A DNA stretch of 64,000 nucleotides, taken from Macrostomum lignano (Eukaryota). Made by a program: the position numbers and the translations under genes. Where the stretch lies: positions 189,393-253,392 of the forward strand of contig NIVC01001668.1 in assembly GCA_002269645.1 (NCBI GenBank), written 5' to 3'. How positions within the stretch are numbered: the stretch's first letter is position 1; each line of letters opens with the position of its first letter. Below the pieces are notes generated by a model. The model searched no databases, was not told the origin of the DNA, and was given only the letters and a program-made list of their open reading frames with translations. Below, in pieces: positions 3,003-63,830 of the stretch.

Positions 3003-3147
3003 CTCATAGTCAAACTCGTCCACGGCATTGTAGAAATTGTCATCGAACGCCGCGTTGATGGCTCCGCACTCGAGATCTGTGAGCACCAGGTCCTGACTGC
3101 CGGACAGGCAGAGCGGCTGACGGGTGCCCGGCCGCTGCAGCTGGCAA
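3003..3147 (-). CDS. PDZRN3/4-like gene, internal exon ((F)CQLQRPGTRQPLCLSGSQDLVLTDLECGAINAAFDDNFYNAVDEFDYE)
   Basis: CCAG acceptor and GT donor. Phase matches the phase-2 donor at 3709. It ends in EFDYE, like the E/DxEYE motif preceding the second PDZ of PDZRN3/4. Confidence 0.75.
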
Positions 3148-3169
3148 CTGGACGAAGGGAGGTGGGATT

Positions 3170-3690: not shown

Positions 3691-3708
3691 TGATTTCAGT
3701 ATACTCAC

Positions 3709-4217: not shown

Positions 4218-4334
4218 CTGGGGTGGGAGCGAAGATTTTGAAACTCATTTGATGATGGGATCAAATGGGATGCTGAGTCTCATCGGGATCTGCTTCCGAT
4301 TGGCAAAGAAAAAGTCGGCTTCGATTCTAAATTT

Positions 4335-7825: not shown

Positions 7826-7987
<162 letters not shown>

Positions 7988-8769: not shown

Positions 8770-10205
8770 TGGATGAGATGGGACTCTGCTACTATCATCT
8801 TGGAGGAGATGGGACTCAACTACTATCATCTTGGATGAGATGGGACTCAACTACTATCATCTTGGATGAGATGGGACTCAACTACTATCATCTTGGATGA
8901 GATGGGACTCAACTACTATCATCTTGGATGAGATGGGACTCAACTACTATCATCTTGGATGAGATGGGACTCAACTACTATCATCTTGGATGAGATGGGA
9001 CTCAACTACGCTCGTACTATCATTTTGGATGAGATGGGACTGAGCTACTATCATTTTGGATGAGATGGAACTCAACTACTATCATCTTGAATGAGATGGG
9101 ACTCAACTATCATTTTGGATGAGATAGGACTCAGCTACAATCATCTTGAATGAGATGGGACTCAACTACTATCATTTTGGAAGAAATGGGACTCAACTAC
9201 TATCATCTTGGATGTAATGGGACTCAACTACTATCATTTTGGAAGAAATGGGACTCAACTACTATCATCTTGGATGTAATGGGACTCAACTACTATCATC
9301 TTGGATGTAATGGGACTCAACTACTATCATTTTGGAAGAAATGGGACTCAACTACTATCATCTTGGATGTAATGGGACTCAACTATCATCTTGGATGATA
9401 TAGGATTCAGCTACAATCATCGTGAATGAGATGGGACTCAACTATCATCTTGGATGAGATAGGATTCAGCTACAATCATCGTGAATGAGATGGGACTCAA
9501 CTATCATCTTGGATGAGATAGGACTCAGCTACAATCATCTTGAATGAGATGGGACTCAACTATCATCTTGGATGAGATAGGATTCAGCTACAATCATCGT
9601 GAATGAGATGGGACTCAACTATCATCTTGGATGAGATGGGACTCAGCTACAATCATCGTGAATGAGATGGGACTCAACTATCATCTTGGATGATATAGGA
9701 TTCAGCTACAATCATCGTGAATGAGATGGGACTCAACTATCATCTTGGATGAGATAGGATTCAGCTACAATCATCGTGAATGAGATGGGACTCAACTATC
9801 ATCTTGGATGAGATAGGATTCAGCTACAATCATCTTGAATGAGATGGGACTCAACTATCATCTTGGATGAGATGATTCAGCTACAATCATCGTGAATGAG
9901 ATGGGACTCAACTATCATCTTGGATGAGATAGGATTCAGCTACAATAATCTTGAATGAGATGGGACTCAACTATCATCTTGGATGAGATAGGATTCAGCT
10001 ACAATCATCTTGAATGAGATGGGACTCAACTATCATCTTGGATGAGATAGGATTCAGCTACAATCATCGTGAATGAGATGGGACTCAACTATCATCTTGG
10101 ATGAGATGGGACTCAGCTACAATCATCGTGAATGAGATGGGACTCAACTATCATCTTGGATGAGATAGGATTCAGCTACAATCATCTTGAATGAGATGGG
10201 ACTCA
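8770..10205. repeat. 31-bp minisatellite (GGATGAGATGGGACTCAACTACTATCATCTT) grading into a 28+31 = 59-bp dimeric unit
   Basis: Unit read directly. Alternation of the two sub-units starts at about 9380. Confidence 0.95.
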
Positions 10206-11959
10206 AATTTCTAAAACTTGTCAGTCTGAGTTTTGGAAAATCCGGGCCTTCAAAAAGAGATCTCCTAGAAAAAAAGAATGCTGTTTATTTGCTTCTGGTT
10301 GTGATTTGGTCCTGAGCGAAGCAGCAGCATCTGATCTAAAATAAATAAAATATTACCTTTAGAATTATGAAGTCCATTGTGTGCTTGAAATTGTTAAATT
10401 ATCAATTTCAGATGGCTGATCGAACCGAGAGCTGCGCTGTCGAAATCAAAGATGAAGCCTCTTTTAATTGCTTGAAATTTCGGACATTATTTCCGGTGAT
10501 TATTCTATGTCGGAACTGGACTTAGCAGGAATAAAGTGACTAGTCTACATGCCAACTTCGATATTCTGTTTTGCTGCAACAAGCCTTCTAGAAGTAAGTT
10601 GTTCATCGACCCCCACCCCAGTTATATGCCCGACCCATTCTATCAGCTTCAGTTTTTCATTGGCTGCATCAGGCCTTCCTCGTGTAGTTCTGACAGTTTT
10701 CTGCAATCTTTACATCAGTATATTTTATGGCTTAACTTGCTTTACTTACTACTGCACACCAGATTAGTCAGTAGCTTAATCGACCGTGGCAAGTATTTCT
10801 TTCCAAATGAAAAACCAACAAAAAATCGGAAACGGGGCGCTTTGCTGATTCCGAAGCGGGGCAGACAGACTGACTGACTGACTGACTGATTTAGAGAAAT
10901 TTTGCCTCCAGAAATTTCTTCTGACGGGCGAACTTCTCTCGCAGGGGGGGTGAGCTTAGGGGGGAGGGGCATGCAGTGACTCATCTTGAGTTGCCGAAGT
11001 CCCCGAGCCCGTTATTAGCTAGCTGATTCACTGAATCGATCCAAAGCGAACCGAACCCGATGAGCTCTGGCCAGACAGACTTATTCAATTGAACATAAAT
11101 TTCTCGGGAATTCTTTCGGCTCCCTGAATCCTACAGGAAATTTCTCCTTTAATGGAAACTCGCTGCGAGCCCAAAAGTCCTTGAACTGAACCTAATAGCA
11201 CAGACAGAGAGGGAGATCATTTGAAAAGTTGAATTAGAATTTTTTGCATCCGGGAATGGCCTCCGGTTATCGAGGATCTTCCCAAACTGCGGGCGGCTGA
11301 GCTTCCCTCTTCCATCTCAGAGTCATTACTCGACAGGCCTGCCCTCGAGCTGCACTGACTCACGCATAACATTATCGGGGAAGTGAGCCTTAAAATCCTT
11401 CCCTATAGTCGAAGGCAGGATCATCCCGCGGGAACATTGGGGATTTTCCGGTAAAGAAACGGACTAAAAAGAAGGCAAAGAGCTGGGAGCCGATCTCAGC
11501 TGCCTCATCTACATTCTGGTTAAGCCTGTATTATAAATGAGCAACAACAACAGGGCATGGACCTTCAGATTCAATTTCCTGAGCATAGCAAATTCAACTC
11601 TGGCAGCATGTGACTGGCTATTTGTCACCCGCTTCCTCAGTCTTGGCTACTCAAGCTCAGAAAACCGGACATTCCTTCCGCAGTGCAGCTCAGCGCGTAC
11701 AGTCAGCTAAGGCCACGCCCTGAGTGACGATTTTGATTGACAGGTGAGGAGCCGCTCACCAACCAACCCACTCACCCAGCCCTAAATGCTGTCTGAATGC
11801 ACAGCCGCTTATGAAACAGAAGGAGTGACTGAGCAGAGAGGGCTAGCTCATTGGCACTGTGGACTGCAGCCCAATGGTTGAGAGAAAAAGTGCAATGCTA
11901 GCGTCTAATGAACGCTGAGCTGCCATTCTCAAAGGAAAATATTCCCAGAGAAGAGAATC

Positions 11960-13065
11960 TCACAGGACAGGGGAGAGACTCACAGGACAGGAGAGATAGA
12001 GACTCTCACGGGACAGGAGAGATAGACTCTCACGGGACAGGAGAAATAGACTCTCACGGGACAGGGAGAGACTCTCACAGGACAGGGAGAGACTCTCACA
12101 GGACAGGGGAGAGACTCTCACAAGACAGGGGAGACACTCACGGGACAGGCGGACAGGGGAGAGACTCTGAAAGGACAGGGGAGAGACTCTCACAGGACAG
12201 GGGAGAGAATCTCACAGGACAGGGGAGAGACTCTCACAGGACAGGGAAGAGACTCTCACAGGACAGGGAAGAGACTCTCACAGGACAGGGGAGAGACTCT
12301 CACAGGACAGGGGAGAGACTCTGAAAGGACAGGGGAGAGACTCTCACAGGACAGGGGAGAGAATCTCACAGGACAGGGGAGAGACTCTCACAGGACAGGG
12401 AAGAGACTCTCACAGGACAGGGAAGAGACTCTCACAGGACAGGGGAGAGACTCTCACAGGACAGGGGAGAGACTCTGAAAGGACAGGGGAGAGACTCTCA
12501 AAGGACAGGGGAGAGAATCTCACAGGACAGGGGAGAGACTCTCACAGGACAGGGAAGAGACTCTCACAGGACAGGGAAGAGACTCTCACAGGACAGGGGA
12601 GAGACTCTCACAGGACAGGGGAGAGACTCTCACAGGACAGGGGAGACTCTCACAGGACAGGGGAGAGACTCTCACAGGACAGGGGAGAGACTCTGAAAGG
12701 ACAGGGGAGAGACTCTCACAGGACAGGGGAGAGAATCTCACAGGACAGGGGAGATAGAGACTCTCGCAGGACAGGGAAGAGACTCTCACAGGACAGGGGA
12801 GATAGAGACTCTCACAGGACAGGGGAGAGACTCTCACAGGACAGGGGAGAGACTCTGAAAGGACAGGGGAGAGACTCTCACAGGACAGGGGAGAGAATCT
12901 CACAGGACAGGGGAGATAGAGACTCTCACAGGACAGGGAAGAGACTCTCACAGGACAGGGGAGATAGAGACTCTCACAGGACAGGGAAGAGACTCTCACT
13001 GGACAGGGAAGAGACTCTGAAAGGACAGGGGAGAGACTCACTGGACAGGGAAGAGACTCTCACAG
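11960..13065 (+). repeat. ~22-bp minisatellite (GGACAGGGGAGAGACTCTCACA)
   Basis: Read directly, with 21-26 bp variants. Confidence 0.95.
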
Positions 13066-14149
13066 AACAAACTCAACTGAATCTTCAATAATCTGTCGGT
13101 AGCTGACTTGGCCCTGTTATCAATGGATAATGGGATAATTCTGAGGCAATAAATCCCGAGGCCAAATTACTACTACCCAGCAACACTAGGCCCTCATTTG
13201 TTAGGCTTTAATTTTACGATTATGCTGCTAAACAACCTTAGCGGACCTATCGATGTTAGCTTTGCTTCTTAAACCGAGTTTTACGAGGGCATTATTACCC
13301 AGGCCCTCAACCTCTCTCCTGGGGGTGTCATGTCATCTTTCAGCTCTTTATCGCGGTGGAAAGGGAGGGGATAGCGGTTGTTCCCAAAACTGGCCTTTCG
13401 AAAGGAGGGGGCACAGATGGCCCGCGGATTTGGGATTATCGGGGTGTGCGACTCTGCGTGTCTTTTTGACCCGACGGAGGAGGCGGCATCCTCTGTGATG
13501 CGTGATAGTCCTCCGCTGCCGCCCAAGCCTCGGCGGCAAACATCAAAGAGAATCGGCGGCGGTCCCTTCCCCCAGCATCTTTCCCTGCAATTGGGCTGTT
13601 CCTCTGCAGCTCGGGCAGCTGCCGGGTCAAAAGCCAAGGCCCTTTTTGTTTAGGCCATATATCTATCTATTAGTTAGCTTGCACAGCCGGGCTGCTTTAG
13701 TTGATGGCTTCACACGCTTGCGACTGTCAGCGCATTGCTAAGAGGGTTGGAGGGACATTGCGGACTCTGCCGCGGCCTGGAGCGAATGGAATGCAGAGAA
13801 TTTCTTTCACCCAGGCCATTGCAGCGGTTCTTCTTCAGCAAGCGATGTCAGTCATACTTCTGCCGCCTATTAATACTGCCGAATAGCAGAGGGCTGGGCT
13901 GGATGCGTGACAAAAAGATTTATAATAAAACTGTGTAATTATCATTGGGCTCGTTTGAAGCTGTACAGTTTATGGGCATGATGTCGTGGACTTCGTTTTC
14001 TACTAAAAGCCTGGACTGGAAGCCAAGGAGCGAAACTTGAAACTTGAGCAGAATTAGAAAATTCGAAAATAGATTATTTAACTCTCGTAGTGCGTCCAGT
14101 CCCAGGCAGATTTTTTCAGGAAACATGGCACCAGACATGACTGAATCTC

Positions 14150-14910
14150 TCCCCTGTCCTGTGAGAGTCTCTCCCCTGTCCTGTGAGTCTCTTCCTGTCC
14201 TGTGAGAGTCTCTTCCTGTCCTGTGAGAGTCTCTTCCTTGTCCTGTGAGAGTCTCTCCCCTGTCCTGTGAGAGTCTCTTCTCTGTCCTGTGAGAGTCCCT
14301 CCCCTGTCCTGTGAGAGTCTCTTCCTGTCCTATGAGAGTCTCTTCCTGTCCTGTGAGAGTCTCTTCCTTGTCCTGTGAGAGTCTCTCCCCTGTCCTGTGA
14401 GAGTCTCTTCCTGTCCTGTGAGAGTCTCTTCCCTGTCCTGTGAGAGTCTCTTCCCTGTCCTGTGAGAGTCTCTTCCTGTCCTGCGAGAGTCTCTATCTCC
14501 CCTGTCCTGTGAGAGTCTCTCCCCTGTCCTGTGAGAGTCTCTCCCCTGTCCTGTGAGAGTCTCTCCCCTGTCCTGTGAGAGTCTCTCCCCTGTCCTGTGA
14601 GAGTCTCTCCCCTGTCCTGTGAGAGTCTCTCCCCTGTCCTGTGAGAGTCTCTTCCCTGTCCTGTGAGAGTCTCTCCCCTGTCCTGTGAGAGTCTCTATCT
14701 CCCCTGTCCTGTGAGAGTCTCTTCCCTGTCCTGTGAGAGTCTCTCCCCTGTCCTGTGAGAGTCTCTATCTCCCCTGTCCTGTGAGAGTCTCTTCCCTGTC
14801 CTGTGAGAGTCTCTCGCCTGTCCTGTGGGAGTCTCTTCTCTGTCCTGTGAGAGTCTCTCCCCTGTCCTGTGAGAGTCTCTCCCCTGTCCTGTGAGAGTCT
14901 CTCCCCTGTC
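14150..14910 (-). repeat. The same 22-bp minisatellite in inverted orientation (CCTGTCCTGTGAGAGTCTCTCC)
   Basis: Reverse complement of the 11960-13065 unit. Confidence 0.95.
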
Positions 14911-15659
14911 TTTCACACCCTGCTTTCCCACCTGCTCCCTGAAATGTACCGAGATAAAGTTGAAAATCCCATTTAAATGACGACAACCTAGATTTTTTGT
15001 TATTCGTTTCTCCCAGTCCAGGCTGAATCCCAGACATCCGCGGTTCACTTCAAACAGACCGGCAGTGCATCGGGCGAGGAGGGGATTCAATTAATTTTTT
15101 TTCGAACTCTTCACCCTGGTTTTTGGTTGATATAAACATTTTCCCAATGCCTCCTAGGGAAGTGATAAACATCCCCACATTCGAGACACAGCTACTGGGC
15201 CCTGTAAACTGGCGGTCTCTGGTGATCTATGACTGACTGCCTGGCTCCATGGACTAACCAATGGGGCTTTGTCCTGGGACTGATGACACCTGGAACCAAT
15301 GCTTTGCATCGATTCTGGGAAACGACGCATCATCATCATCATCCTACGGGAGTCTGGGACAGAACCGGTCTGTCTAAGAAAATTGTTTATACAGTCCGCT
15401 CAGCTCTGTTTAGCTGCAGAGGGCCATTAAAAGCGGCATCTCCCTTTTCAGTGGCTATGGGAGTTTTGCAACAGTTGAGCCCACAGTATGAATGAGATTA
15501 TGGAGCAAGCCGAGTCAAATAAAATTTTATGGGATGAGATAAAAATAGGGAATAAAACCGCAAGGAATACTTAAGTATCGGATGGTAGAACTGCTACAGG
15601 ATATCTTGGATACATTTTTGTTTACCCGTCATTATTCGCCTAAATTATCATCAATCCAC

Positions 15660-15965
15660 CTCGATCCGCCCCGATCCGCCCCCGATCCGCTCCCGATCCG
15701 CTCCCGATCCGCTCCCGATCCGCTCCCGATCCGCCCCCGATCCGCTCCCGATCCGCTCCCAATCCGCTCCCGATCCGCTCCCGATCCGCCCCCGATCCGC
15801 TCCCGATCCGCTCTTAATCCGTCCCGATCCGCCCCGATCCGCTCCCGATCCGCTCCCGATCCGCCCCAGATCCGCTCTCGATCCGCCCTGATCCGCCCCA
15901 GATCCGCTCTCGATCCGCCCTGATCCGCCTTCAATCCGCTCCCGATACGCTCCCGATCCGCCCCC
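15660..15965. repeat. 11-bp tandem repeat (GATCCGCTCCC)n next to a splice donor
   Basis: Read directly. It starts about 12 bp inside the GTGAGT donor at 15982. Confidence 0.93.
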
Positions 15966-15982
15966 GACAAGCGGCCACTCAC

Positions 15983-16096
15983 GCAGAACAGCAGGTCACC
16001 CTGTCGCATGCCGGCAGCCCAGGCTGGCGAGTCGCGGTCCACCTTGGCAACAAACACCAGGCCGAAAACGGCCGCGGCAGCGGCGGTAGTTGAGTC
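15983..16096 (-). CDS. PDZ gene exon: middle of the PDZ domain ([38 protein letters not shown])
   Basis: TTCAG acceptor, GTGAGT donor, 114 bp, phase 0-0. It joins in frame to VNGQDL at 4217. FVAKVxxDSPAxxAGMRxGD is a PDZ signature. Confidence 0.85.
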
Positions 16097-16149
16097 CTGA
16101 ACGCGACGGGGAGGCCAGTCGGCGATTCAGTTTATGAGCGAACAAGGAC

Positions 16150-16460
16150 TGGGAAAAGCTTATGGGAGGAACAACTATTCAGGAAAGCAAAGATTGAGAT
16201 TCAGGTAGTGATAAGAATGAGATTCAGGAAGATATAAAAATGAGATTTAGGAAGAGATACGTATGATACTCAGGAGGAGAGAAGAATGTGATTCAGGAAC
16301 ACAGAAGAATGGGATTTAGAAAGAGATAAGAATAAGATTCAGGTAGTGATTAGAATGAGATTCAGGAAGAGATAAGAACGAGATTCAGGAAGAGAGTTAG
16401 AGTGAATCACAAACAAGCACTCGAGTGACAAGAGGATAGACTGGAGTGACAAGAGTAGAG
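16150..16460. repeat. Degenerate purine-rich tandem repeat (GAGATTCAGGAAGAGATAAGAA-like)
   Basis: GAGATTCAGG recurs through the intron between the two PDZ exons. Confidence 0.6.
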
Positions 16461-16492
16461 TGAACCAAGAGCTCCACAGTGATGCAACCAAC

Positions 16493-16585
16493 CATCCTGG
16501 AGAGCTCAGCAGCCTGCAGCCGGCCTCCGGCGAGGGTGACGCCCCATTGAACGGCTGCATCCGCGCGGCGCAAGATGAAAGTTTT
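16493..16585 (-). CDS. PDZ gene exon: N-terminal PDZ strands (KTFILRRADAAVQWGVTLAGGRLQAAELSRM)
   Basis: ILRR...WGVTLAGGR is the carboxylate-binding-loop motif. Phase-0 donor ATG|GTTGGT. The 5' boundary is uncertain (a CAG acceptor is assumed). Confidence 0.6.
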
Positions 16586-18627
16586 CTGCCAAGCGGCGCT
16601 CAGCACCGCGCCGGGCGTTACTTTTGTAGGAAAAGTCTGAAATTTAAGAAAAAATTAAAACAGAAAATAGACTTTCTAATTAGTGCTTTCAAGCTGTCGA
16701 CCCTGGGTAGGGGCTTAAGTGGAATCAAACGATAGAATAACATTCCAGCAGAGAGTCAAACAGCAGTCACCGCGGCCCCGCCCGCCCGACAGCAACAATT
16801 CTCCCCTTTGTCCTCATTCAAATTCCATATTCTACCCTCCCAAATTGAGGAGGAAAAGGCACGATTTTAGCGGACAGCAAAAACAGCCTCTCTCTCTCTC
16901 TCTCAGCTGCTTTCTCTTGTCACTTCCGCAGATGCCCGCCCACCGCCCGCTGTGTGCACCGCATGGGGTCGCCCGCTGAAGTCCTCCGAAGCCCATGGAT
17001 ACAATTAATCTGAAGGCAGCTAAGGATCTCAGAGTCTTTATCACAGCCCCCCCCCCCGAATAGTGAGGCATTCCAGTGCAAGTATAACAAGAAGCGAAAA
17101 GTTGAAAAAAAGCACAAGCAAAACTAACAAAGCGCCCACTCTCAAGGGCTGTTCAGCAGCTGGGCCACAATGGACTGGGAGCAGAATTTCTACGCAGACA
17201 CGGTCGATGGGAGTTCAACAGGCAGACAGAATGGCAGGCAACCCTGAACAATACGCAACTCGTGCTCATCTGGTGCAGGTCATGGGAGCGAGCCATCTGC
17301 TATCCATCTGCAGTTATCGACGCGGAGTTACGCAAGACCAACTCGACCCTTCATTCAACAGCTCAAAAAAGAGCGAAAAAGCAACGATTTATGGCCTGCT
17401 GGAGACAGTGAAAGGAAAACTGCCTTTTGTATTCCTGTCAAGTGTTGTTGGGCTTCTGTCGAACGCCACTAAAACTCTTCGTTTCTTCTTTCCATGCAGT
17501 TTGTGGCTCCATACAGCGACCCGTTTTCAGCAATAGAAGCACAAAAAGCTGTTTTTATGACAACCAAGACTTGCGTTTAATGACCTCCATCTGACCTCCA
17601 ACAGCTGTCGCCAAAAAGGATGTGAAACAAAGCGGCAGCCATAGTCAGCTCAATGAGTCCTATTCAGGATGATCAAGGATGCAGTTGAAGAAGTCAACTT
17701 GACCTCAAGTCCTATAGTCCCGTGCTCGACATATCTATTGTTTCTTTTTTTCTGTTGAAGATGCTCAAGAGTTTCACGTAATATCCGGGCAAGTGGAGAC
17801 TGGAACCTGTTTTACCTGACTTTGTGAATCATACTGACTCATGGCAGTACGAACTGGACTGCTAACGGATTTTTTCAATTGACAATAAAATAAACTGCCA
17901 CCCCCGACTGCAAACATGGCTCTGTTCGGATTGCGTAACCAGCGCCTTGCCTCGGGCCACAGATGGGCCGCAGATGGATCTGCCGAGGAAACACAGAGCG
18001 ACAGTTAGCGGAAGAGGGACTCATAATTAGATTTCGACGTGTGGCATATTTGATGAGGAACAGAGCTGGCCTCCTCCCCTGAGGGGAGGAGGGAAGAGAG
18101 AGAAAGAGAGGGTGTCAGTTGTCACTCCGGGTCTTTGTGCGTTAAATTTGTTACGTCATACATTGACACAACCGACCCATGCTTTACTCTGCGACACTTC
18201 GTCACTCACCGAATTCTGACGCCCGTTGAAAGCGACCAAGTCGATTTGGTCCAGTAGAACCATGGCTCTCACAGCGGGTTGGTTGGTTCCGCCCTCTCGT
18301 ACTCGAGTGATGAAGCGGATTGCTCCAGGAGTGGTCTCAGACTGCCAGTCTGTGGGAGAGACTGTCGGAGCAACTGCGGCTTTTATAATAACCGCCTCGA
18401 CGTTCCAGGGTCTGCGTCGCGGGTCTCCCCGTCCCTCCCCTCCATCGAGCGATTGGGGACGGGTGGGGACCCCGCCCCCCAACCAATAGGAAGTGCTTTG
18501 ACTTGCTTCTGGTCAAACATTCGCTCTCAGCAATGTGAATGTAAAAACCCTTAGCGCTTACTATTAGTAGGCGAATCAGCTTGTTAACATACAGTGACAG
18601 TGATGTTGTGGGAATGTCCTCCTAAAA

Positions 18628-18982
18628 CAGGGGTCGGCAAACTCCGGCCCGCTCAAAGCTTGTGTCTCTTCTTTCCTCTCTCCTCCCTCTCTCTCTCTCC
18701 TCTCCCTCCTTTCTCTCCTCTTCTCCCTCTCCTCTTTCCTTTCCTACCTCCTTTCTTCTCTCTCCTCTCCTCTCACTTCATCGATTGCATCCCTCCTCTC
18801 TTCTCCTTTATACCCTTACCTCTACTTTCTCCTATCTCTCTTCTCTCTTCTCTCTTCTCTCTTCTCTCTTCTCTCTTCTCTCTTCTCTCTTCTCTCTTCT
18901 CTCTTCTTTCCCCCTCATCCGACCCGAAGTCTGGTCTGGGTTCTCTATTTGGCCCTTGTTTTAAAAAGCTTGCCGACCCCTG
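18628..18982. mobile_element. hAT-family MITE containing a CT/GA microsatellite
   Basis: TIRs CAGGGGTCGGCAA / TTGCCGACCCCTG and a perfect 8-bp TSD TCCTAAAA (18620-18627, 18983-18990). Confidence 0.92.
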
Positions 18983-19402
18983 TCCTAAAACTATAGGAAA
19001 CCTTGCGGGAGACCCACAAATCATCAATATTAGCAGTTTGAGTTCAGTAGAGCAGCATCGTAAACAGTGCTCATACCAGTTTATCTTAAAATAAATTGCT
19101 TTGTTTTCCCCATAAAGCTGTAATTGCGTCAGACAATATTGCTCCCAGTAGCTACCTATCTGAGGCTGACTGACTACAGTTGTAGGCTATGGGGCCGCTT
19201 GGTTAAAATTAATTATTCCAGGCTCAACCGTTGTTGTTTGCCTCCGATGAAAAATGGCCAACAATCTAAATATATATATATACTGCTTCCCACACAGAGG
19301 TCATAATCCGCTATTGTTTGAGTATCTGTGAGCTCCGCTAAAAACTAGCCAACGTCCTCAGTAAAGTATACTTACTGATAGTGGCCTTTGTTGCGATCTC
19401 CA

Positions 19403-22400
19403 ATGGCAACGAGTCTCGGCAGTTGGATAAAGGAGAAGTTAAAAAAGGCTGGGAGCTGCGCCGGTTGCTACAAGCGAATGTACTCTGCCAGCAAGTCCTC
19501 AGCAGCATCGGTCAGGCCAGCGGAGCCAGCCGAGATGCAGGAAGCTCAAAAAGCCAACATCGGCGACACTGACGAAAAGGACGACAAGAACGACAAGTCG
19601 ATTTTGATGTCGCTGATGAGCTTCGCAGATTCCACCACTGCTCACGGGTTCTCTCGGCTGGCGGGCTCCTCAGGTCGAACTGGCAGCGGCCTGTGGCTGC
19701 TGTTTCTGCTGGCGGCCTACGCGGGCCTCTGCTACCACACCGCCACGCTGGTCCTCAAGTTCCAGAGCCACCCGGTGTCCACCAGCCTGATTGCGGAGGT
19801 TCCATTCCAGTACCCGGACATCTACCTGTGCAGCGCCAATCCTGTAGGCTACAGCCGCATCACCAAGTCCATCCAGAAGACGGCCGACTACGCCTACCTG
19901 TACGAGACCAACGTGACGGCTTACAACTTGAAGCTGCAGAGTGACGTCATTAACAACAGTGCGGCGGATGTCAGCCTAGGAATCCACACCGCTTGGCTTA
20001 ACTGGCAGACGGAGATTCTGTCTAGCAGGGTCAATCTGTCGAAAGGTGCATCGAATTTTAAAATTACATTACTGGTTGAATTGATTCTTTAAAGTGTCAT
20101 ACTCAGCATCTGGCCTACGGAAAAAGCGTTAGTCTCTCTTTGGTCAGGAAAGATATAAAGGTATGCAGGTGCGAATACGTAGCATTTGAAGCTTCGATGA
20201 TAGCAGTGACCTCATGGTCATGGCCATTTCGCTGGATTGAGTCAAGTTTCGGATTAGTTAAAGTTGGTGAAAATGTCACTTAGATTGACGAAATGTGGAG
20301 TTTTTTTTTCAAAAAAATCACTTTCCACAAAAATACAGACTTCTTCAACAGCTGCAGGATCTCTCTGCAAGGGGAAGAGTTCACAGGAAACTACACCACA
20401 GCGCTTACCTACAACCAGAGCCTGCAACCGATCCGAGTGCCCTGCGTCACCTGGTCGGAGGCCCGATCGCTCGTCAGCAACATCTCATCCACCATAGGAA
20501 ACTTTGTGCCCAACCTGAATCACTCTTCCTGCCTGTACAACTCGAAGTTGGACGTTTTGATGACAAAGACTGTTCTGGGCAATTGCAGTTTCTTAAACAT
20601 GATTCTTAATCTGACGTCCAAGGATGCACTATTACTAAAAATTGCTTTCTGCCTAAAACATTTGTAGGTGTTCCAAAATTAGACAGCAACTACACGATTG
20701 GCAAAGTAGTGCAAGGTCCGTTCTGCTTCCACAGATCTGGGAGTAGCGACAGCAGACTGGACATCAACTACTGCGGTGTGCCGTTCTGTAGTGAGTTCTC
20801 CGTGCTTTTTTGAGCTGAAAATTTATCGAAAATTCTAGAACACGGGTTGAATTTTTGTTGCGCACCTTCTGAAACATGAATGAAGTCGCCAGCCCTCCAG
20901 ACGGTCGAGATATTCAACGATTCTGCCAGAAGGTCGGATTTTTCCCATAAGCGCCAGTGTATTCAATACAACCTGTGCGCCAATCAGCACTGCGCCTCAT
21001 TACAGCCTTGCCAAGCCTCCAAATTTCATCAGAACGTCTACCGCATGTGTCTGCATCAGCTCTGACTTCGTTGGTCGCTGGCCTTCACCCAGACAGAGCT
21101 TCTGTCTGATAGATTATACTAGATTAGATCCAGACCAGAATAGAATAGACTAGGCTATATTAGAACTAGACTAGACTAGACTAAAATACTGTAGAAATAG
21201 ACTAGAATAGACTAGAACTAGATTAGAACTAGACTAGTCTAAATTAAAAATAGACTAGACTAGTGATTTGAAATTCCTACTGTAAAACCTTGCTGCAGGA
21301 AAACCCCCATCGGAAAATTCTCACAGACCCTTTCAAACGGTACTTAACTGAAAAGTTCCTAGAAATTTTCAATCCAGAATTAAAGTACACAATGTCACGG
21401 TTTAGAGTAGAAAACCATAAACTGGCCCGCGAAACAATCAAGGACTGCGAAACCAAGGATCCCTTACGAGAACCTACCCAAAGTGCCATGTGGGAGTGGA
21501 AAGTGAAGTTCACTTCCTGTTAAATTGTAGTTGGAACTTTCATAGTGCTCCCTGTGATAAATTCTTGAATAAACTTTAAAATTAAAAAACGTTACAGCAG
21601 ACGGCAAAGTATTTTATCTAATAATAAAAAAATAATTGATAACACCTGCCCCGATTGGGCCAGATGTGCAACCGACAGCTCAGCCGCAGCTATCTGAAGG
21701 CTGCGTACGGCTGTTCAGTCCAAGGACTGGGGGATCGCCACACGCACCCTCAATTACCCCAGCTAATGCTGGCACCCATTTTACAGCTGGGTGAACTGAA
21801 GCAATGCAGAGTTAAGTGTCTTGCTCGAGGACACTAAGTGTTCCAGTGAGATTAAGAATCGAACCCCCGACCTTCAAGTCGTGAGTCAGACGCTCTAACC
21901 ACTTGGCTACAGTCCCCTTTTAGTTAATGACTCCATAAGATCGAGACATATTGAAAATTTTAGCTAAGTTCATCAAATGCCCGGTACATGGCACAGGCCG
22001 GAAGGCAACTGCCCTGAGGCTTTATATTGGTTGAGCAAAAATATGCTCGAATTGCTCTGTTAGCGCACGATATTTCGAAGGCTCCTACACCGCATCTCCT
22101 CAATGAACTGTAAAACCGTCCCGCAGGCAAGGCTGAAAACAATCTTGCCGACTGCTCAGCTCGCATCACCAGCGGCAGCTCAATCAGCACAACCTACATG
22201 GGCTCAGAGCAGACGTCGCGTTCTGGAAAATCGTGCCGATCGTGGGAGGCCCTGGCGAATGGCAGCCTGGCTGCAGAGTTTCAAAATCTGAACTCCAGCT
22301 TCGAGTATCGCGTGTTCCTGCCCGACCCAGACTCGGTTGCCAGCGTTGGCAGCGGCTGTCGGAGCGCAGTCGTGATGTTCAAGGACCCCAGCAGTGGCCT

Positions 22401-25011
22401 GGGCTGGCAGTCCATCTACAAACTCATCATTGACAGCGACGTTGAAAATGAGTCTTGGTGTCTGGTTGAAAAGCCGAATTATAAAAACCTCACGCTTGAG
22501 GGCTGCGCTGTTCCTGACTGCTGTGAGTAAGGCGTGGCAAGGTGGGGAGAGTGAAGTATACTCGTACATTATGCATATGTATACTCGTACTTTGTATAGA
22601 TATATGTCTAACTCGCTGGGCTGTAAACTGCTTGCATGACTTATTAAACTTATTAAACCTGTCTTACAGCAATGACGCAAGCAGCCTATTCAGCTATGTG
22701 TAGTGAGTGAAACAAGGCTAGACTGCTTGTTGTAGTCGATAGTTGCCGAAAGCTTGCAGGCGAGAATAATAGCGATCAGTATATTTATTGAATTATTGAG
22801 CTGAGTCAGGGTGGTGGCTAAAGTCACACTATGCACATTTGATATTGTACGCACAAGGGTAGAGCTAGCAAAGTCACGCGGCGTAGCCGCTAACAACTAC
22901 CCCAACACACACGATAGTAGGCGCTGCCTACACTATGTACTAACCGGGGCTAACTTTGCTTAACTAGCAGCGCTAAACTAAACTGAGACTGACGTCCTAA
23001 TATGAAATTAGCATAGAATGTCTACAAACAACATTCTGATTTACAAACATCCTTTCAGCAACCTCGCTGAAGTGCATCTCAGGCCTGCTGCACCAGAAGT
23101 ACGGACCTCACGTGCTCTCCAAGCTGGTCGGTCCGAGCTTGGACGTTACCCTGCTCGACTGCAGCTTCGGTGACAAGAAGTGCACACCGGCTGACTTCAC
23201 TGCGCTGCACCATCCCTACTACGGCGCCTGCTACAAGTTCAACAGCGCTCCGTTCCTTCGAGACCTGACGCCGATGCAGCACGGTTTGCGTCCGCTCAGC
23301 CTGAAGCTGTTCGCCGACGATCACGACTACCTGGGGAACCGGCGTCCGGACACCTTCACGGCCGTCCGAGCAGTCATGGGCGGCCCGTACAACACCGGAG
23401 ACGTGAGCGAGCCGGCAGGTTTTCGGCTGTTCGTGATGCCGCCGGGACAGCATCCAAGCTCCCCGAATGCCATCATCATCTACACTGGGGCCCAGTCAAC
23501 GGTTCAAATTAAATTTGTTGAGAACACGGACCACACAACGAGAGGCCTGTGCAACCCGGTTGAGTCAACCATTGACTACAGCATCCACAGCTGGAGCCCG
23601 ACTGTACGTCGACCGAGGAACGAACAAAACTTCTCGTCACTAGATCCCTACTTTTTGTGAGTCAGACTCACACTTCTGACAAGAAACACTCGTACCATCC
23701 GTCAGACTCAATCTGAAACACAGTTCTTATCAATTTTGCAAAAATTTTAACTCCAACTTACTCACGAAAATTTCAGTGAGTTCAACAATAGCTGGACGTT
23801 TGTAAGCGACCAGGAGTCTTGCGCCAACCACATTGTTATCGACGAATTTATTAGGAACTGCGACTGTCTGCCCTACCTGTTGCCAATTCCGACCAAATAC
23901 AGAAACATCCCAGACTGCTTCTATCTGAACAGCTCCGACCCCGCTGGTATTGAAAAGTTGCAGCTGAGCGAGTTCTGCGCCGTCAAACTGTTCACAAAGA
24001 TGGAGACGCTCATAGAGAAGCATTGGGCTGCATGCAAGCCCAACTGTCGGAAGCCTCACTACTCGGTGCAGCTGGTGAGCATTCGATGTTGCTTGGCATT
24101 GAATTCGAAAGACAATAATTCAAGAGCTTGGTAGTGAAGTCGTGTGGCTTGGATACGTTTAGATACGCTTGGACTACGATATGCCCTAACGTCTATGACT
24201 CAAATTGTTACAGTTGTGGTTGCGTCTTGTTCAGGCCACAGATACTAAATAACTATAATTCGTTATATAGTATCTGTGATTCAGGCTTTTTGTATAGAAT
24301 AACACGCCATTCAATTCACATTCTACGAGCGTATGTTAATCCATCAGCTAGACAAATATACAATCGAGCTCATATTTCCGAAAGTCCGTTCTCTGAGTTA
24401 GCTTGTCCATGCTACACCCAAGAACTACTTAAGTTGTCCATGCTACATCTACTCTACGTTCAGGATTTTTGGTTCTGCGGTAAAACCCATTGCTGATTTT
24501 ATCAAATCAATTTTTATCGACATCAACCTTCTAGACGACTCAGCCGTGGCCCTACGCGTCCCACGCCGCTTACAACGCGACGCTGCAGTCGCTCACTTCG
24601 CTGGTCGGCTTCCCGAAGCAGGTGAGCCCCGACCAGGGCCTGGCCATGCTCTACTACTCCTACCTGCAGGGTGAGCAGCTGATCCAGCCCAGCTCGGTGC
24701 AGCGCTTCGGCCAGTCGCTGGCCATGCGAGAGGCGGCCCGCAGCAACCTGGCCTGGATCCGGGTCGAGGCCGAGTACCCGATCGGGTCCGGCAGCGCCCA
24801 GGCCGACGGATATCCGGTGGAGAATCTGCTGGCCGAGATGGGCGGCATTCTGGGTCTGTACTGCGGCGTCTCTGTGCTGACCATCTGCGAGCTGATGGAC
24901 CTGGTGGGCCGCCTGCTGCACCGGGCCGCACTGCGGTCGCTTCGAGGAAGACAAGTTGACAGCATCGGCGACTCGTCGAGTAATTCGAAAGTCGCTTCAA
25001 CCACAGTTTAG
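19403..25011 (+). CDS. DEG/ENaC (amiloride-sensitive Na+ channel family) gene A with two kringle-like modules; 7 exons, 924 aa predicted
   Basis: Exons 19403-20045, 20339-20578, 20668-20790, 22127-22522, 23059-23656, 23777-24074, 24535-25011 splice in frame (2775 nt). Motifs: FADSTTAHG, TM1, QYPDIYLCSANP, DCSFGDKKC, PYYGACYKFN, Cys-rich thumb, TM2 LLAEMGGILGLYCGVSVLTICE. Confidence 0.9.
20339..20790 (+). other. Kringle-like module 1 of gene A (exons 2-3)
   Basis: Six Cys in kringle spacing: C-RISLQGEEFTG...PCVTW...SSCLYN...GPFCF...INYCGVPFC. Confidence 0.75.
21100..21265. repeat. Degenerate (CTAGA)n microsatellite in intron 3 of gene A
   Basis: Read directly. A longer mirror copy lies at 55965-56340. 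Confidence 0.85.
21270..21560 (+). mobile_element. 5'-truncated LINE 3' fragment (C-terminus of ORF2, L2/Crack/RTE-X-like)
   Basis: MSRFRVENHKLARET followed, after a frameshift, by KCHVGVESEVHFLLNC. This is the typical RFRxxxHxLxxET...CxxCxxxxExExHFLLxC tail. Confidence 0.75.
21620..21910 (-). mobile_element. tRNA-derived CORE-type SINE
   Basis: The minus strand has box A TAGCCAAGTGG and box B GGTTCGATTC. A CORE-like segment CATTTTACAGCTGGGTGAACTGAAGCAATGCAGAGTTAAGTGTCTTGCTCGAGGACAC is present, with an AT-rich tail. Confidence 0.82.
22127..22522 (+). other. Kringle-like module 2 of gene A (exon 4)
   Basis: DC...TYMGSEQTSRSGKSCRSW...GCRS...ESWCLV...EGCAVPDC matches the kringle consensus YxGxxxxTxSGxxCxxW...CR...PWC...CxxPxC. 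Confidence 0.85.
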
Positions 25012-26628: not shown

Positions 26629-29600
26629 ATGTCTGATAAAAAAATGAGCAAAGAAGAAGAAGTCCATCAAGACAACCGAGACGAAAACGACGAGGAACGC
26701 AAAGCGTCGGTCTCGGTGTCGCTGCTAAGCTTCGCAGATTCCACCACTGCTCACGGGTTCTCTCGGCTGGCGGGCTCCTCAGGCCGAACTGGCAGCGGTC
26801 TGTGGCTGCTGTTTCTGCTGGCGGCCTACGCGGGCCTCTGCTACCACACCGCCACGCTGGTCCTCAAGTTCCAGAGCCACCCGGTGTCCACCAGCCTGAT
26901 TGCGGAGATTCCATTCCAGTATCCGGATATCTACCTGTGCAGCGCCAATCCTGTAGGCTACAGCCGCATCACCAAGTCCATCCAGAAGACGGCCGACTAC
27001 GCCTACCTGTACGAGACCAACGTGACGGCTTACAACTTGAAGCTGCAGAGTGACGTCATTAACAACAGTGCGGCGGATGTCAGCCTAGGAATCCACACTG
27101 CTTGGCTTAACTGGCAGTCACTAATTCTATCTACCAGGGTTAACATGTCACCGGGTGAGGCAGTGCTTTGGTTGTTCATTGTATGCCATTTTCACTGAAC
27201 ATTACACTATTCATTCAGGCAGTTTAACAGTTTGATTGATGCATCTTGAAGATGTTGATTTGATCTCGTGGTGCACGAAAGTAAGAATTCATCATTTAAA
27301 GACAATTCTTACTCATGTAGTCAATTGGTAGCTTTTGATTTAAGTTGCCACTTATTGCAAAACCAAAAACATTGCACCTGATCGTGCTAAAATTGTCTGA
27401 TTTACAGTGGGTAAAATGTTAGTTTTCCAAGTAAATAATTTGATTCAATCAGTTCGGCACGCTTCCTTGTTTGAGCAGCTTGAGCCATATGGGCTGAGCA
27501 CACTGCTTGTTGAGTGGTCTGTTGACGCTTAAAAAACTAAATTTGCAGGGCTACCTGCAGAGGGGAGCATAATTTCTGCTACAGTTTTTTGGTCTCAAGC
27601 GAACAGGAAATTTTAAGTCACAGCAGATGCGATTAACAGTAGTTAAGGTCCGACTGTGAATTTTTCATAAAGTTTGCCGGGCGCTACCCAAAAAGTTTTC
27701 GATGTCTTATTCAAACTAGAAGAGGTCTCAGGAAAGTCTGCTCAGCCCGTACCTTGCCTAAAAAGTCAAGTTGTTTGTCAAAGTTCTTATGCTACTTTCT
27801 GCTGCATTACATTTCAAATTTGACTTATTAATAACTTACTAAACAGAGTTGCGTCTCCTTACTTTGAGCACAATACCATAGCATATTGGGTTTCACTAGA
27901 TCAAGCATCTATATACCTGCAGACCTCCTCAACAGCTGTCGGATCTCTCTAAATGGCCAGGAGTTCACAGGAAATTACACCACAGCGCTCGCCTACAACC
28001 AGAGCCTGCAGCCGGTCCGAGTGCCCTGCGTCACCTGGTCGGAGGCCCGATCGCTCCTGATCAATATTTCATCCTATATTGGCAACCTGGTGCCCGACCT
28101 CAGCCACTCCTCGTGTCTGCACAACTCCAGTGTAAACATCTCGCTGATCAAGGCTGTGTTAGGCAAGTTCTTAAGCTAAAATTTCTGTTCTTGGTTCGTT
28201 AGAAAATGCTCGATCAGAAATTCAATCGAATCACACAGGCTCCTACGACGGTGACCAGAGTAGCTACACCATTGGCAGAGTCTTTCAAGGCCCGTTCTGC
28301 TTTCACAGATCCGCTAACAGCAGCAGCGGACTGGATATCAACTACTGCGGCGTGCCGTATTGCAGTGAGTTGCCAACTGGATAATCTGCCTGAAGCTTGC
28401 ATGGCTTCCTATGAAATTGCAGTGGCAATGTTTACCCATTCTGAATGCCAACTAGCCTGAGAGGGAATAGTTTCTAGCGCAAATAGCTATAAAGAATAAA
28501 ATTGCCAGATGCTGCAGTTGACATGCCTATAATTCAGATGTAGATCCTTGACGCAGCATTCCCGCAAAAACAGATGTCTTTTACCCGGATATCCTTGATG
28601 TACGCAGACAAGGCCAACAACACTCTGTCCGGCTGCACATCATTCAACTCGAACATATCCGTGAACACGGTTTTCATGGGCAGCGTGAGGACGTCACGAT
28701 CCGGCAGGACCTGTCAGCCCTGGCAAGCCCTGGTTAACGGCAGTCTCAGCACACAGTTCCGCAACCTCGATCCGGTCATGGAGTTCCGCGTGTTCCTGCC
28801 CGACCCCGAATCTGTTGCGAATGTTGGAAGCGATTGCCGCAGCGCCGCAGTGATGTACAGGGACCCCAGAAAGGGACTGGGCTGGCGACCCATCACTGAG
28901 CTCATCATTGATGGACAGGTGACCCAAGAGCCTTGGTGTCTAGTTGAGAAGCCAGGCTACAAGAATCTGACAATGGAGAGCTGCAGCGTGCCCGACTGCT
29001 GTGAGTTCCTAATGACTATTTTAAAGGGACAGCACGGTCCTCATATTCTAAAAGTACGTAGAAAAACTTACTTTTTGAAAATCCAAATTGCAGCATCTTC
29101 GCTGAAGTGCATCTCAGGCCTGCTGCACCAGAAGTACGGACCTCACGTGCTCTCCAAGCTGGTCGGTCCGAGCTTGGACGTCACCCTGCTCGACTGCAGC
29201 TTCGGTGACAAGAAGTGCACACCGGCTGACTTCACTGCGCTGCACCATCCCTACTACGGCGCCTGCTACAAGTTCAACAGCGCTCCGTTCCTTCGAGACC
29301 TGACGCCGATGCAGCACGGTTTGCGTCCGCTCAGTCTGAAGCTATTCGCCGACGATCACGACTACCTGGGGAACCGGCGTCCGGACACCTTCACGGCCGT
29401 CCGAGCAGTCATGGGCGGCCCGTACAATCTCGGAGAAGCGAGTGACCCGGCTGGATTCAACTTGATCCTGATGCCGCCGGGAGCTTATCCGGGCACCTCA
29501 CATGCCATTCCAATTTACACGGGGGCTCGGTCCACTGTTCGAATAAGCTACTTCGAGGACACGGACAACACAACAAGAGGTTTTTGCAACCCTCTGAAGT

Positions 29601-32600
29601 CAAGCACCAACTACAGTATCTACAGCTGGAGCCCGACCGTGCTTCGACCAAGATACGAGCAGAGCTTTTCGATGCTGGATCCGTACTTTTTGTGAGTTTG
29701 AGCAACTTTAGCTCATGTAAATGTAAAAAGCCGTTTTACTTCTTATATGTTGTGAGATTGTATTTCCGTTGATTTGTTTAAAAAATGAAAATGCAAATTA
29801 TTTCTTTTCGCAAATGATATTGATATCGCTTTTGACAAGCTAAATGGAAATTTGGACAATCAAAACGGGACGCAATAGACATTCAAGCCAGGCCGCAGAC
29901 TCGGGCTGCTTGGGAATACACAACCATAGAGTGTGAAATGGACAATCAAAACGGGACGCAATAGACATTCAAGCCAGGCCGCAGACTCGGGCTGCTTGGG
30001 AATACACAACCATAGAGTGTGAAATGGACAATCAAAACGGGACGCAATAGACATTCAAGCCAGGCCGCAGACTCGGGCTGCTTGGGAATACACAACCATA
30101 GAGTGTGAAATGGACAATCAAAATGAAAAAAAGCCATTCAAAACGGGAATTTGCCCAATGTAATGTATTTTTTATATCTCGGGCCACTGGAATATTTAAA
30201 AGTGAAGAAAGTGCCAGTTACCGGAAGATTCTTGCTCTTGTTCAATCGCATCTATGAGCCGCTGGCGATCTGCTACAGGAATTGGTGACGCCATTGAATG
30301 GGATCGCTTTCAGGCCAAAGACGAGCAAGCAGGAGAGGGAGGGACAGAGAGCTATAAAATCTCAGTCCGATTTCCGTTTTGAATCGCTTTTTACCATATC
30401 GAAGGTCCAAAGTTATAGTCTATGGCCAAGCCTCCCTCAGTAGACTCTGAAAGAACTGTTTAAGTCCATGACTAGGGTGAGATCTGTGGCCTGGCTTGAA
30501 TGTCTATGGCGTCCCGTTTTGATTGTCCAAATTCCCATTAATATCGCCAAAAGCGATAATACGAAGCTCATTGTCTAACAATTTGACGTAAACACCACAC
30601 CCCAAGGGAAGGGAAGACGGACGCGAGTGTTTGCGAGTATCGAGTACAGTGCGAGTGGATGCGACGGTCCAAAATCCGAAAAATGATGGGAAAAATAGTG
30701 AAAGAAAAACGGGGGGCACGCAGAATTCTGGTCACGCTTGCAAGCAAAATAAAATAAGCAGTCATTAAAACAGCACTTAATCGATAAAACAACAGTCATC
30801 ATTGCAAAAAAGATAAAATACAAAATAAGAAAAGTGCACGAGTTGAGAAGAAAGAAACCAGAGCATTTGAGTCCAAGCCAGAGGAAAAAGAAAGCAGACA
30901 GCACACAAGCTTCTACCCAGAGCAGGCAAACGAAAAATTATAGGCATTGAGACAGTTTGCGAACAGCCGCCAGCTGGAGGTCGAAGCCTTTCTCCAGCCC
31001 CAGGTACACCTCAACCGCCGAGCTCCGCCAGTCGCCCAGGGCCTTGACGACCGGCAGCGGCACACCGGCGCGGAACGCCAGCGAGGCGCCGCCGCGTCGA
31101 AGGCTGTGAGGGGACAGAGACCGGTCTGCCAGGCCGGCACGGTGGACGACGTGCTGAAACAGGCGACAGAACCGGGTGCCGGTCAGAGGCGTCAGGCCGC
31201 CGCTGCTTCGGTAGGCGAAGAGGTGGGCAGCAGCGGCGCGGTCGGGCTGGTTGATGCGCAGGTGGTGAAGCAGCGCTGCCACCGGGCAGAGCGGGTGCTG
31301 CGCGCGTGCCGGAGGCGCGCAGGACAACGCGGTGCACTCGCTGGCGGAACTGGTTCGTCTTGGAGCGCCGAATGTGCAGGATGGCCAGATCCGGTGATAC
31401 TTGCAGGTCGCCGCAGGTGACCGCCTCGCCGGCTGGTGGGAACGGTTTCGAGCAGCACAGATTGGCGCGGCGCAGGAGGCCCCAGAATCCGACCAGGGCC
31501 GCCGCCCAGAAGGCTGCATCTTGAGGCTGCTGCAGGCGCAGGGTTCCTCGCAGTTTGAGGAGGTCACCCAGAGTGATGGGCGCCTTGCGCACCGGCGGCT
31601 TGGCGAGTTTGCGCTGCACACCGCGGAGGAGCAGGTCGAGGCGGGGGTCGCGAGGAAGGCCGCGGCCGGTCTGGAGCTTGCAGTGCAGGTCTGCGGCGTT
31701 AATGTACGCACCGACGCTGGCATGCGAGGAGAGGCGGTCGGACAGCGCGATGATGTCGTGCGCGACCTGCTGCAGAGACGGTCTGGTGCTGTCGATGCGC
31801 ATCTGCTTGCAGAACCGCTTCCAGGAGTCGATCTGGCAGCGGTAAGAGCGCGCGGTTGTCTCAGCGAAGGCCAGGTGGCAGAGCTCGCGGTAGCGCTTGC
31901 TGAAGTTCGCGCTCGGGACTTGAGGCGGGCGATTTGTAGGGCGAGAAATTCGCAGGTGGCTGGCGAGAGGGTGTGCTCTCTAAGGTTGCTAAGGTCAACG
32001 TGAACAGAGCCAAAGAGCCGGAGCAGGAAGTTTGTCAGCTCGCTGATGTCATCGGCTCGGCTGCCACTATCAGCGAAGATCTGGAATGTCCCAGGGACGT
32101 GGAAGGCCTGGACGGAGAGGTCGCGGTGCGCAGCGAGGAGCATCAGCTGTTGCAGAGCCGAGTTGACGACCCGATTTGGCGACGAGCCCTTGTTGATGGC
32201 GCCGACTGCGGCGGTGCTGTTAGAGTAGATCACAAGCTGGCTGCCCAGTTGCAGCTGCTGCTGGAAATGCAGGGCCGTAAGCACTGGCGCGAGACTTTCC
32301 TTGAAGTTGATGTGGTTGAGTCGCGGTGCCAGTCCATGATGAGCCAACTGGTGGTGTCTGGGCCGCGGATGATGCCGCAGCCGCCCCAGTTGGACGCGTC
32401 GGACTCGATGGCCCAGCTGGGCCCGTGGAACGCCAGATTTTGCAGCTGGGGGAGGCGGCCAGGCAGGCGTCCCACCAGCTGGATCTCGCGGAGATCATTG
32501 TGCACGCGCAGTTTGTGCCGCTGCTGCTTCAGGTCGCTGAGCTCGAGCAGGAGTGGTCTCAGGAAGCACCTCCCAATGCGGACCACCTGGCAGACCCAGT

Positions 32601-63798: not shown

Positions 63799-63830
<32 letters not shown>

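Follow-up and report, generated by a model that had tools for sequence, protein, structure and literature searches.

The stretch of the Macrostomum lignano genome analysed here (contig NIVC01001668.1 of assembly GCA_002269645.1, positions 189,393 to 253,392 of the forward strand; 64,000 nucleotides, hereafter the window, in which positions are counted from the first nucleotide) contains a cluster of genes related to DEG/ENaC ion channels. One of them, gene A (19403-25011, plus strand), is intact, and its seven exons are predicted from the genomic sequence to give an open frame of 924 amino acids (aa) after splicing. The product is a predicted subunit of a DEG/ENaC (ASIC/ENaC-type) channel, the extracellular finger region of which is enlarged by two consecutive six-cysteine modules related, to different degrees, to kringles. 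The span given for such a channel in a first-pass annotation of this DNA coincides exactly with the ATG-to-stop extent of gene A, and all the sequence strings cited there are found in it.

The gene A protein matches the Pfam family ASC (PF00858) with 157.4 bits (cutoff 23.6, E 8.2e-46) in two stretches, one on each side of the insert. Among solved structures the best match is the FMRFamide-gated channel (FaNaC) 7yvb (E 2.4e-15), followed by ENaC beta, gamma and alpha and by ASIC1, which agrees with the earlier assignment to the DEG/ENaC channels. Hydropathy peaks solely at about aa 96-118 and 865-890, and these two hydrophobic segments align to the first and second transmembrane segments (TM1 and TM2) of FaNaC, ENaC and ASIC. 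The protein also possesses the HG motif (in TTAHGFSRL), the GVS filter (in LYCGVSVLT) and, in the LLAEMGG stretch of exon 7, a small residue at the degenerin position, so that it shares with the superfamily (FaNaC, ENaC, ASIC) the two transmembrane segments, a large Cys-rich ectodomain, the HG motif, the GxS filter and the small degenerin-position residue.

Both modules together occupy aa 215-467 (253 aa), after the PDIYLCSANP strand (aa 138-147) and before DCSFGDKKC (aa 501-509). Module 1 is encoded by exons 2 and 3 and has its Cys residues at positions 220, 250, 279, 314, 330 and 335, and module 2 is encoded by exon 4, with Cys at 345, 372, 413, 447, 462 and 467. Two blocks align with FaNaC, namely residues 65-161 of gene A with 62-160 and residues 491-623 with 199-322; between them lie about 330 aa in gene A, whereas the corresponding blocks are separated by about 39 aa in FaNaC and by about 133 aa in ENaC beta. 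As aligned blocks are found on both sides, the insert is located in the finger region, which is also the enlarged region in ENaC and degenerins; the two six-Cys modules from exons 2-4 and their position in the finger had both been read correctly in the first pass.

Mobile extracellular modules that spread by exon shuffling are expected to have flanking phase-1 introns on both sides. In gene A and in the three further copies of the window, designated A', B and B', exons 2, 3 and 4 start and end in phase 1, and the end of exon 1 and the start of exon 5 are likewise in phase 1, so each module is a symmetric 1-1 cassette within an otherwise single phase-1 intron between exon 1 and exon 5. These cassette boundaries are the signature expected of exon shuffling, and dropping exons 2-4 preserves the frame, with exon 1 joining exon 5. 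All the introns of gene A are of the GT-AG type except intron 2, at the exon 2/3 junction, where the only phase-compatible donor common to all copies is a GC donor (G/GCAAGT in B, B' and A', G/GCAATT in A). An alternative GT donor located 12 nt downstream is present in gene A alone; it adds the residues NCS, i.e. a 13th Cys, and is used by the UniProt model P0002.

When A is compared with B, the ratio of nonsynonymous to synonymous divergence (dN/dS) amounts to 0.20 in exon 2, 0.11 in exon 3, 0.17 in exon 4 and 0.27 in exon 5, with synonymous divergence (dS) of 0.7-1.7 in the module exons. With values of 0.11-0.20, the modules are therefore translated, constrained coding sequence under purifying selection. 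The insert contains 9 of the 16 N-x-S/T sequons of the protein, counted as sequence motifs and representing predicted glycosylation, and neither RxxR nor dibasic motifs were found when these were sought in the finger of gene A.

Kringle (PF00051) is the sole Pfam family matched by module 2, and it is matched in three paralogues, namely A (21.9 bits, E 2.3e-4), B (25.6 bits, E 1.6e-5) and the database paralogue C described below (24.2 bits, E 4.2e-5). A sequence search of the PDB with a single module 2 sequence gave nine matches at E<=10 and a search with the four-copy module 2 profile gave 30, every one of them a kringle protein (ROR2, HGF, tPA K2, ROR1, prothrombin, apo(a) and angiostatin are represented), each match being weak and the best having an E-value of 0.014. 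Modules from A, B and C were also compared with hhalign to kringles cut out of five multi-kringle proteins (P0004, P0005, P0008, P0010 and P0012). Module 2 aligned with Prob 96% and E 6e-9 over 76 columns, from before the Y-x-G to the last Cys, and none of the 150 column shuffles reached the observed score of 50.8, the null maximum being 20.5.

The six Cys of module 2 are in kringle register, the C-R, W-C and C-x-x-P-x-C motifs are present, and the Y-x-G..T..SG..C-x-x-W motif has, as read from the sequence, the same Y-to-C2 spacing as in kringles. Six co-linear Cys and the motif spacing are thus common to module 2 and the kringles of plasminogen, apo(a), tPA, HGF and ROR1/2. There are two extra stretches, both conserved among the paralogues: one of about 12 aa between C2 and C3 and one of about 22 aa between C3 and C4, the latter standing in place of the NPDxD loop, as had been noticed before. 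By these comparisons module 2 is a real but divergent kringle, homologous to kringles over its whole length. The lysine-binding pocket of kringles, consisting of Asp55/Asp57, Trp62, Phe64, Arg71 and Trp72, is not conserved in module 2 except for Trp62, the Trp before C4: the acidic pocket positions read DSD in A, DGQ in B and DGE in C, and the aromatics before C5 are replaced by L-E-G or M-E-S. The doubt about classical lysine binding voiced in the first-pass annotation is shared here, such binding being unlikely judging from these residues.

An exhaustive profile search with module 2 retrieved 12 proteins: three Macrostomum channels, five kringle proteins (from Diadema, hedgehog, Ptychodera, Branchiostoma and Lineus), three bacterial proteins with PKD/BNR repeats (P0006, P0007 and P0009) and one low-complexity protein (P0011). 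It was initially considered that all the matches outside Macrostomum were kringle proteins, which was dropped because of the latter four. The large E-values in this search are sums of many weak per-repeat matches. The N-terminal half of module 2 (22,147-22,326; C1..YMGS..W..NL..EYRVFLP) aligns to a BNR/Asp-box repeat of about 88 aa from PKD-type surface proteins of Bacteroidota, and this repeat holds the Asp-box SxDxGxTW, a mimic of T-x-SG-x-x-C-x-x-W. The likeness is probably a convergence of motif and composition. In view of the bacterial matches, the kringle case for module 2 rests on hhalign, Pfam and PDB, with the exhaustive search as weaker support; what the latter mainly indicates is that the stretched module 2 is, at the level of sequence matches, confined to M. 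lignano among 1.84 billion representatives.

Module 1 is a harder case. With hhalign the whole module scored 23.2 against kringles (E 1e-3, Prob 20%), which none of the 100 shuffles reached (null 10.6 +/- 2.4), and the exon 3 part by itself scored 23.1 (0/150 shuffles). The signal comes from the last 23 columns, where GPFCF..NYCGVPFC faces GPWCY..YCDIPxC. In a forced global alignment the six Cys, F-x-G, C-x-x-W, GPFC and YCxxPxC are all in kringle order, and module 1 compared to module 2 scored 20.4 (0/150 shuffles). Given this order of the Cys and the likeness to module 2, module 1 is regarded as probably an eroded kringle-type module; most likely it is older or more eroded than module 2, with only the C-terminal third recognisable by sequence comparison. 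Of the kringle pattern proposed in the first pass for both modules, the part concerning module 2 holds by Pfam, PDB and hhalign, and in module 1 it holds for the C-terminal part but not for the rest.

The alternative is that only module 2 is kringle-derived, module 1 being a lineage-specific Cys-rich elaboration of the finger or another fold with a convergent CxxPxC tail. We consider this possible, although doubtful. It would account for the absence of any kringle match of module 1 in Pfam and the PDB, both as a single sequence and as a profile, and for the behaviour of the exon 2 part (the N-terminal two thirds), which lies within the null (30/150 and 104/150 shuffles reach its score); both results speak against a kringle origin of the whole insert. 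In addition, the hhalign probabilities of module 1 are only 5-20%, its F-to-C2 spacing is 8 aa longer than in kringles, and the gene models of paralogue C (P0003/P0015) do not have the C4-C6 part of module 1, although the automatic gene model may have missed a small (123-nt) exon there. What argues for a kringle-type module 1 despite these differences is the C-terminal third, clearly above the null, together with the kringle order kept in the global alignment, the above-shuffle likeness to module 2 and the phase 1-1 boundaries common to both modules.

The modules are found in at least four diverged paralogue groups. Besides A (A-type UniProt entry A0A1I8G9S9, P0002, automatically named Acid-sensing ion channel 1-like) and B (B-type entry A0A1I8GPM0, P0001, Kringle domain-containing protein), there is a third paralogue, C (A0A1I8FXR6, P0003, also auto-named Kringle domain-containing protein), which is 38% identical to A and combines ASC (E 4.8e-29) with the same module 2; a look-up gave no recorded genomic locus for it. 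The fourth paralogue, D (A0A1I8G934, P0018, auto-named Acid-sensing ion channel 4), is an N-terminal fragment with module 1 on record to C3 only. The precomputed annotation of P0003 lists Pfam PF25866.1 beside ASC, a family absent from the Pfam copy searched, and it may be a newer model covering the insert. A word-index protein search with the spliced 924-aa protein gave no match, and an alignment query returned M. lignano fragments only; a search with P0003 returned only P0003 itself.

A full-text literature search combining kringle with ENaC/degenerin or with acid-sensing ion channel retrieved protease and plasminogen papers only, and the papers covering M. lignano DEG/ENaCs do not mention a kringle domain. 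The impression that a kringle plus ASC architecture had not been described before is therefore upheld as far as papers are concerned but not with regard to databases, since UniProt auto-names fragments of these proteins Kringle domain-containing protein. The combination is an unusual one, visible in automatic annotation and apparently undescribed in the literature searched.

By TBLASTN three further copies were located in the window, B at 26.6-34.9 kb on the plus strand and, on the minus strand, B' at 46.5-38.2 kb and A' at 58.2-50.9 kb (Table 1). All 12 Cys are retained in A, B, B' and A', as had been claimed, the identity of A and B being 72% for module 1 and 60% for module 2. The channel cluster (19,365-58,202) is an inverted duplication symmetric about a gap of 947 N, so that the four copies described earlier are indeed present but are not independent, representing two paralogues and their diverged inverted copies across the gap. 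The inner arms (about 29-35 kb versus 38-44 kb) are 99-100% identical apart from scattered 1-nt indels, and the outer arms are 84-98% identical, with dS 0.081 and dN/dS 0.16 between A and A' and dS 0.076 and dN/dS 0.17 between B and B'. This divergence, with dS near 0.08 and dN/dS near 0.16, led us to reject a simple read-through artefact as the source of the palindrome in its outer arms. The inner arms next to the gap, which are 100% identical, are suspect, and the inverted duplication could have come from wrongly joined homeologous or haplotype contigs or could be a real palindrome that underwent gene conversion.

No exon 7 of gene B was found before the assembly gap, and B' likewise has no exon 7, i.e. 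no TM2, in the assembly. The exon 6 indels differ between the otherwise identical B and B', so they look like assembly errors, and probably are. Copy A' has a stop codon in place of W253 (the TGG codon for the W of CVTW in module 1), HE instead of HG, a 5-aa deletion and a 2-aa insertion, and may be a pseudogene or null allele of very recent origin, unless these lesions are base errors.

Table 1. Exons of the channel genes and the assembly gap in the window.
Feature	Position	Strand	Content
Gene A exon 1	19403-20045	+	N-terminus, HG motif, TM1, PDIYLCSANP strand, first ~55 aa of finger; ends in phase 1
Gene A exon 2	20339-20578	+	Phase 1-1; module 1 Cys 1-3 (CRISL..FTG..PCVTW..SSCLYN)
Gene A exon 3	20668-20790	+	Phase 1-1; module 1 Cys 4-6 (GPFCF..NYCGVPFC)
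Gene A exon 4	22127-22522	+	Phase 1-1; module 2, six Cys: YMGSEQTSRSGKSCRSW, CRS, SWC, CAVPDC
Gene A exon 5	23059-23656	+	ASC core: DCSFGDKKC, PYYGACYKFN; palm/beta-ball
Gene A exon 6	23777-24074	+	Extracellular ASC segment rich in Cys
Gene A exon 7	24535-25011	+	Wrist, LLAEMGG, TM2 with GVS filter, C-terminus, stop
Gene B exons 1-5	26629-27154, 27923-28162, 28239-28364, 28608-29000, 29094-29691	+	Open frame, same phases, both modules
Gene B exon 6	34579-34879	+	1-nt indels relative to B'
Assembly gap	36070-37016		947 N; holds centre of symmetry, ~36,522
Gene B' exon 6	38162-38461	-	One frameshift relative to B
Gene B' exons 1-5	45992-46517, 44995-45234, 44777-44902, 44132-44524, 43440-44037	-	Open frame
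Gene A' exons 1-7	57522-58164, 56946-57185, 56739-56861, 55017-55418, 53509-54091, 53092-53389, 50893-51369	-	

Divergence between A and B is a mosaic, with dS of 0.16 in exon 1 (19,535-20,044 compared to 26,641-27,150), 0.34 in exon 5 and the higher values given above in the module exons, which suggests that the tandem paralogues have undergone gene conversion in their channel-core exons.

Several further points weigh against a kringle-bearing channel. The model of gene A, exons 2-4 included, is a prediction read from the genomic sequence alone, and no copy in the window other than A is demonstrably intact. Module 2 lies below the Pfam Kringle gathering score (21.9-25.6 versus 34.3 bits), so the Pfam check suggested in the first-pass annotation came out negative by the curated threshold for both modules, module 1 having no match at all. 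From C1 to C6 the modules span 116-123 aa (123 in module 2) versus about 80 in kringles. The N-terminal half of module 2 also aligns to the Bacteroidota repeat by hhalign with Prob 68% and E 4.7e-5, and part of the module 2 signal is therefore a short S/T-G-x-x-W motif plus composition. The AlphaFold2 model of module 2, built with 6 sequences, is of low confidence (predicted local distance difference test score, pLDDT, 57.7; predicted template modelling score 0.50), and the AlphaFold model of P0002, in which module 1 is slightly corrupted, has a pLDDT of 29.4. Foldseek with the module 2 model found no match at E<1 in the PDB and no kringle, an outcome which, at this pLDDT, speaks neither for nor against the kringle fold.

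It is also conceivable that the kringle-type exons are real but lie outside a working channel, either being skipped or belonging to a decaying or mis-assembled pseudogene cluster. Exons 2-4 form a frame-neutral cassette, A' has the nonsense codon, the HG to HE change and the deletion, exon 6 of B and B' is frameshifted and exon 7 is missing from both, and the cluster is a palindrome around a run of N, all of which would fit. Nevertheless, we consider this improbable: the low dN/dS of the module exons over dS of 0.7-1.7, and the value of about 0.16 for the A/A' and B/B' pairs, imply long-term selection on the peptide, gene A is intact throughout, the indels are not the same in B and B', which are otherwise identical, as would be expected of assembly errors, and automatic gene models from another assembly join the modules with ASC sequence. 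That neither module is homologous to kringles, both being disulfide-rich finger expansions, comparable to the GRIP domain of ENaC or the extra Cys-rich domain of nematode degenerins, that share short motifs by chance, is more improbable still, for although the Pfam scores are under the threshold, the low-confidence predicted fold is not kringle-like, and the same profile collects bacterial Asp-box repeats, showing that short motifs and a composition rich in S, T and N can yield summed "significant" matches, the match of module 2 by hhalign is co-linear, full-length and far above the 150 shuffles, Kringle is the sole Pfam family in three paralogues of 42-60% identity, all the weak PDB matches are kringles and the automatic rules of UniProt also assign a kringle.

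Taken as a whole, the best explanation, and a reasonably likely one, is that the finger of a DEG/ENaC channel has been enlarged by exon shuffling with two modules for which a regulatory role is proposed. The architecture and homology themselves, i.e. a predicted DEG/ENaC subunit with kringle-type modules in its finger, are quite likely to be as described. In the proposed mechanism, the gene A product would assemble as a trimeric DEG/ENaC-type cation channel whose finger was enlarged by the shuffling of kringle-type exons, and two disulfide-locked, glycosylated modules per subunit, six per trimer, would form a crown on the fingers. The modules may then serve as a binding or regulatory cap for an extracellular macromolecule, either a protein ligand or the matrix, which would bias gating. 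In related channels the finger binds FMRFamide (FaNaC), carries inhibitory tracts that proteases release (ENaC) or is turned towards the thumb (ASIC), and kringles are protein-binding modules. Given both, a binding or regulatory cap would be the most likely role, although by this analogy the ligand- or matrix-binding mechanism can be put forward only tentatively. Gating or tethering by a protein ligand, as raised in the first-pass annotation, is conjectural. Furin-type release as in ENaC was considered for A and rejected as unlikely, neither RxxR nor dibasic sites being present in the finger.

It is in the finger that the stimuli of DEG/ENaC channels have diversified. The GRIP domain of ENaC and the extra Cys-rich domain of nematode degenerins are lineage-specific finger expansions regulating gating. 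The gene A insert is likewise a lineage-specific expansion of the finger, but no sequence similarity to these domains was detected, no protease sites were found in the gene A finger, and the origin is different, in shuffled kringle-type exons. Unlike FaNaC and ENaC, gene A has a finger built of two six-Cys kringle-type modules without flanking furin-type sites, and unlike known kringles its modules are embedded in a channel ectodomain and not in a protease, growth factor or receptor kinase. A precedent is provided by the EGAS proteins of C. elegans, named for "EGF plus ASC domain", in which a DEG/ENaC channel is fused to a mobile disulfide-rich module (PMC10424705). Such module fusions therefore do occur in the DEG/ENaC family, although in EGAS the module is EGF instead of a kringle and the lineage is another one. 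As the EGAS channels gave no currents in a screen (PMC10424705), they are no functional guide for gene A. Three other DEG/ENaCs of M. lignano, encoded by different genes, showed no response to neuropeptides (PMC9234716).

A classical protein-binding module recruited in the finger would be a natural experiment on how gating inputs are gained by exon shuffling. Since exon 1 joins exon 5 in frame, a clean deletion construct is at hand, and M. lignano, a transgenic and regenerating model, allows both expression and knock-down. Some reservations apply: the architecture was found in a single species, no more than one of the modules is securely a kringle, and automatic annotation already flags it. 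The most far-reaching version, a small Macrostomum-specific DEG/ENaC family with a kringle-derived crown as a sensor, i.e. a protein-ligand-gated or a matrix-tethered mechanosensitive channel, is speculative and rather unlikely; such a channel would belong to a family whose known stimuli are otherwise protons, small peptides, proteases and force.

Further features of the window were noted outside the channel exons. Intron 5 of B contains retrotransposon open reading frames (ORFs) at 30,938-33,330 on the minus strand, mirrored in B' at about 39,714-42,106 on the plus strand. They code for a reverse transcriptase (RVT_1, E 1.9e-15, with YLDD) followed by a tyrosine-recombinase-like product (Phage_integrase, E 1.2e-4, below threshold), and the element is therefore DIRS-like; it is flanked by an 86-bp tandem repeat (29,853-30,123 and 42,922-43,278). 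Between B' and A' there is a 10-mer array, (TAGCTGATAC)n, of about 127 copies at 47,130-48,409, for which the A-B spacer in the opposite arm has no equivalent (1.6 kb versus 4.4 kb). No tRNA or Rfam family was found when sought in the window. The region 1-19,000 contains dense minisatellites that read as long repetitive ORFs (6-1604, 3124-3693, 4365-6454 and 11,908-13,041). Exon fragments resembling PDZ domains lie on its minus strand at 15,635-16,057 (PDZ_6, E 1.8e-5, below threshold), and there is a possible further PDZ-like fragment, with no Pfam match, at 3,708-4,217. At the other end, a (GAGAGAA)n satellite of 5.3 kb and about 767 copies (58,687-64,000), purine-only on one strand (GC skew of about 0.97), lies upstream of A', beginning some 0.5 kb from its start codon, and continues past the end of the window.

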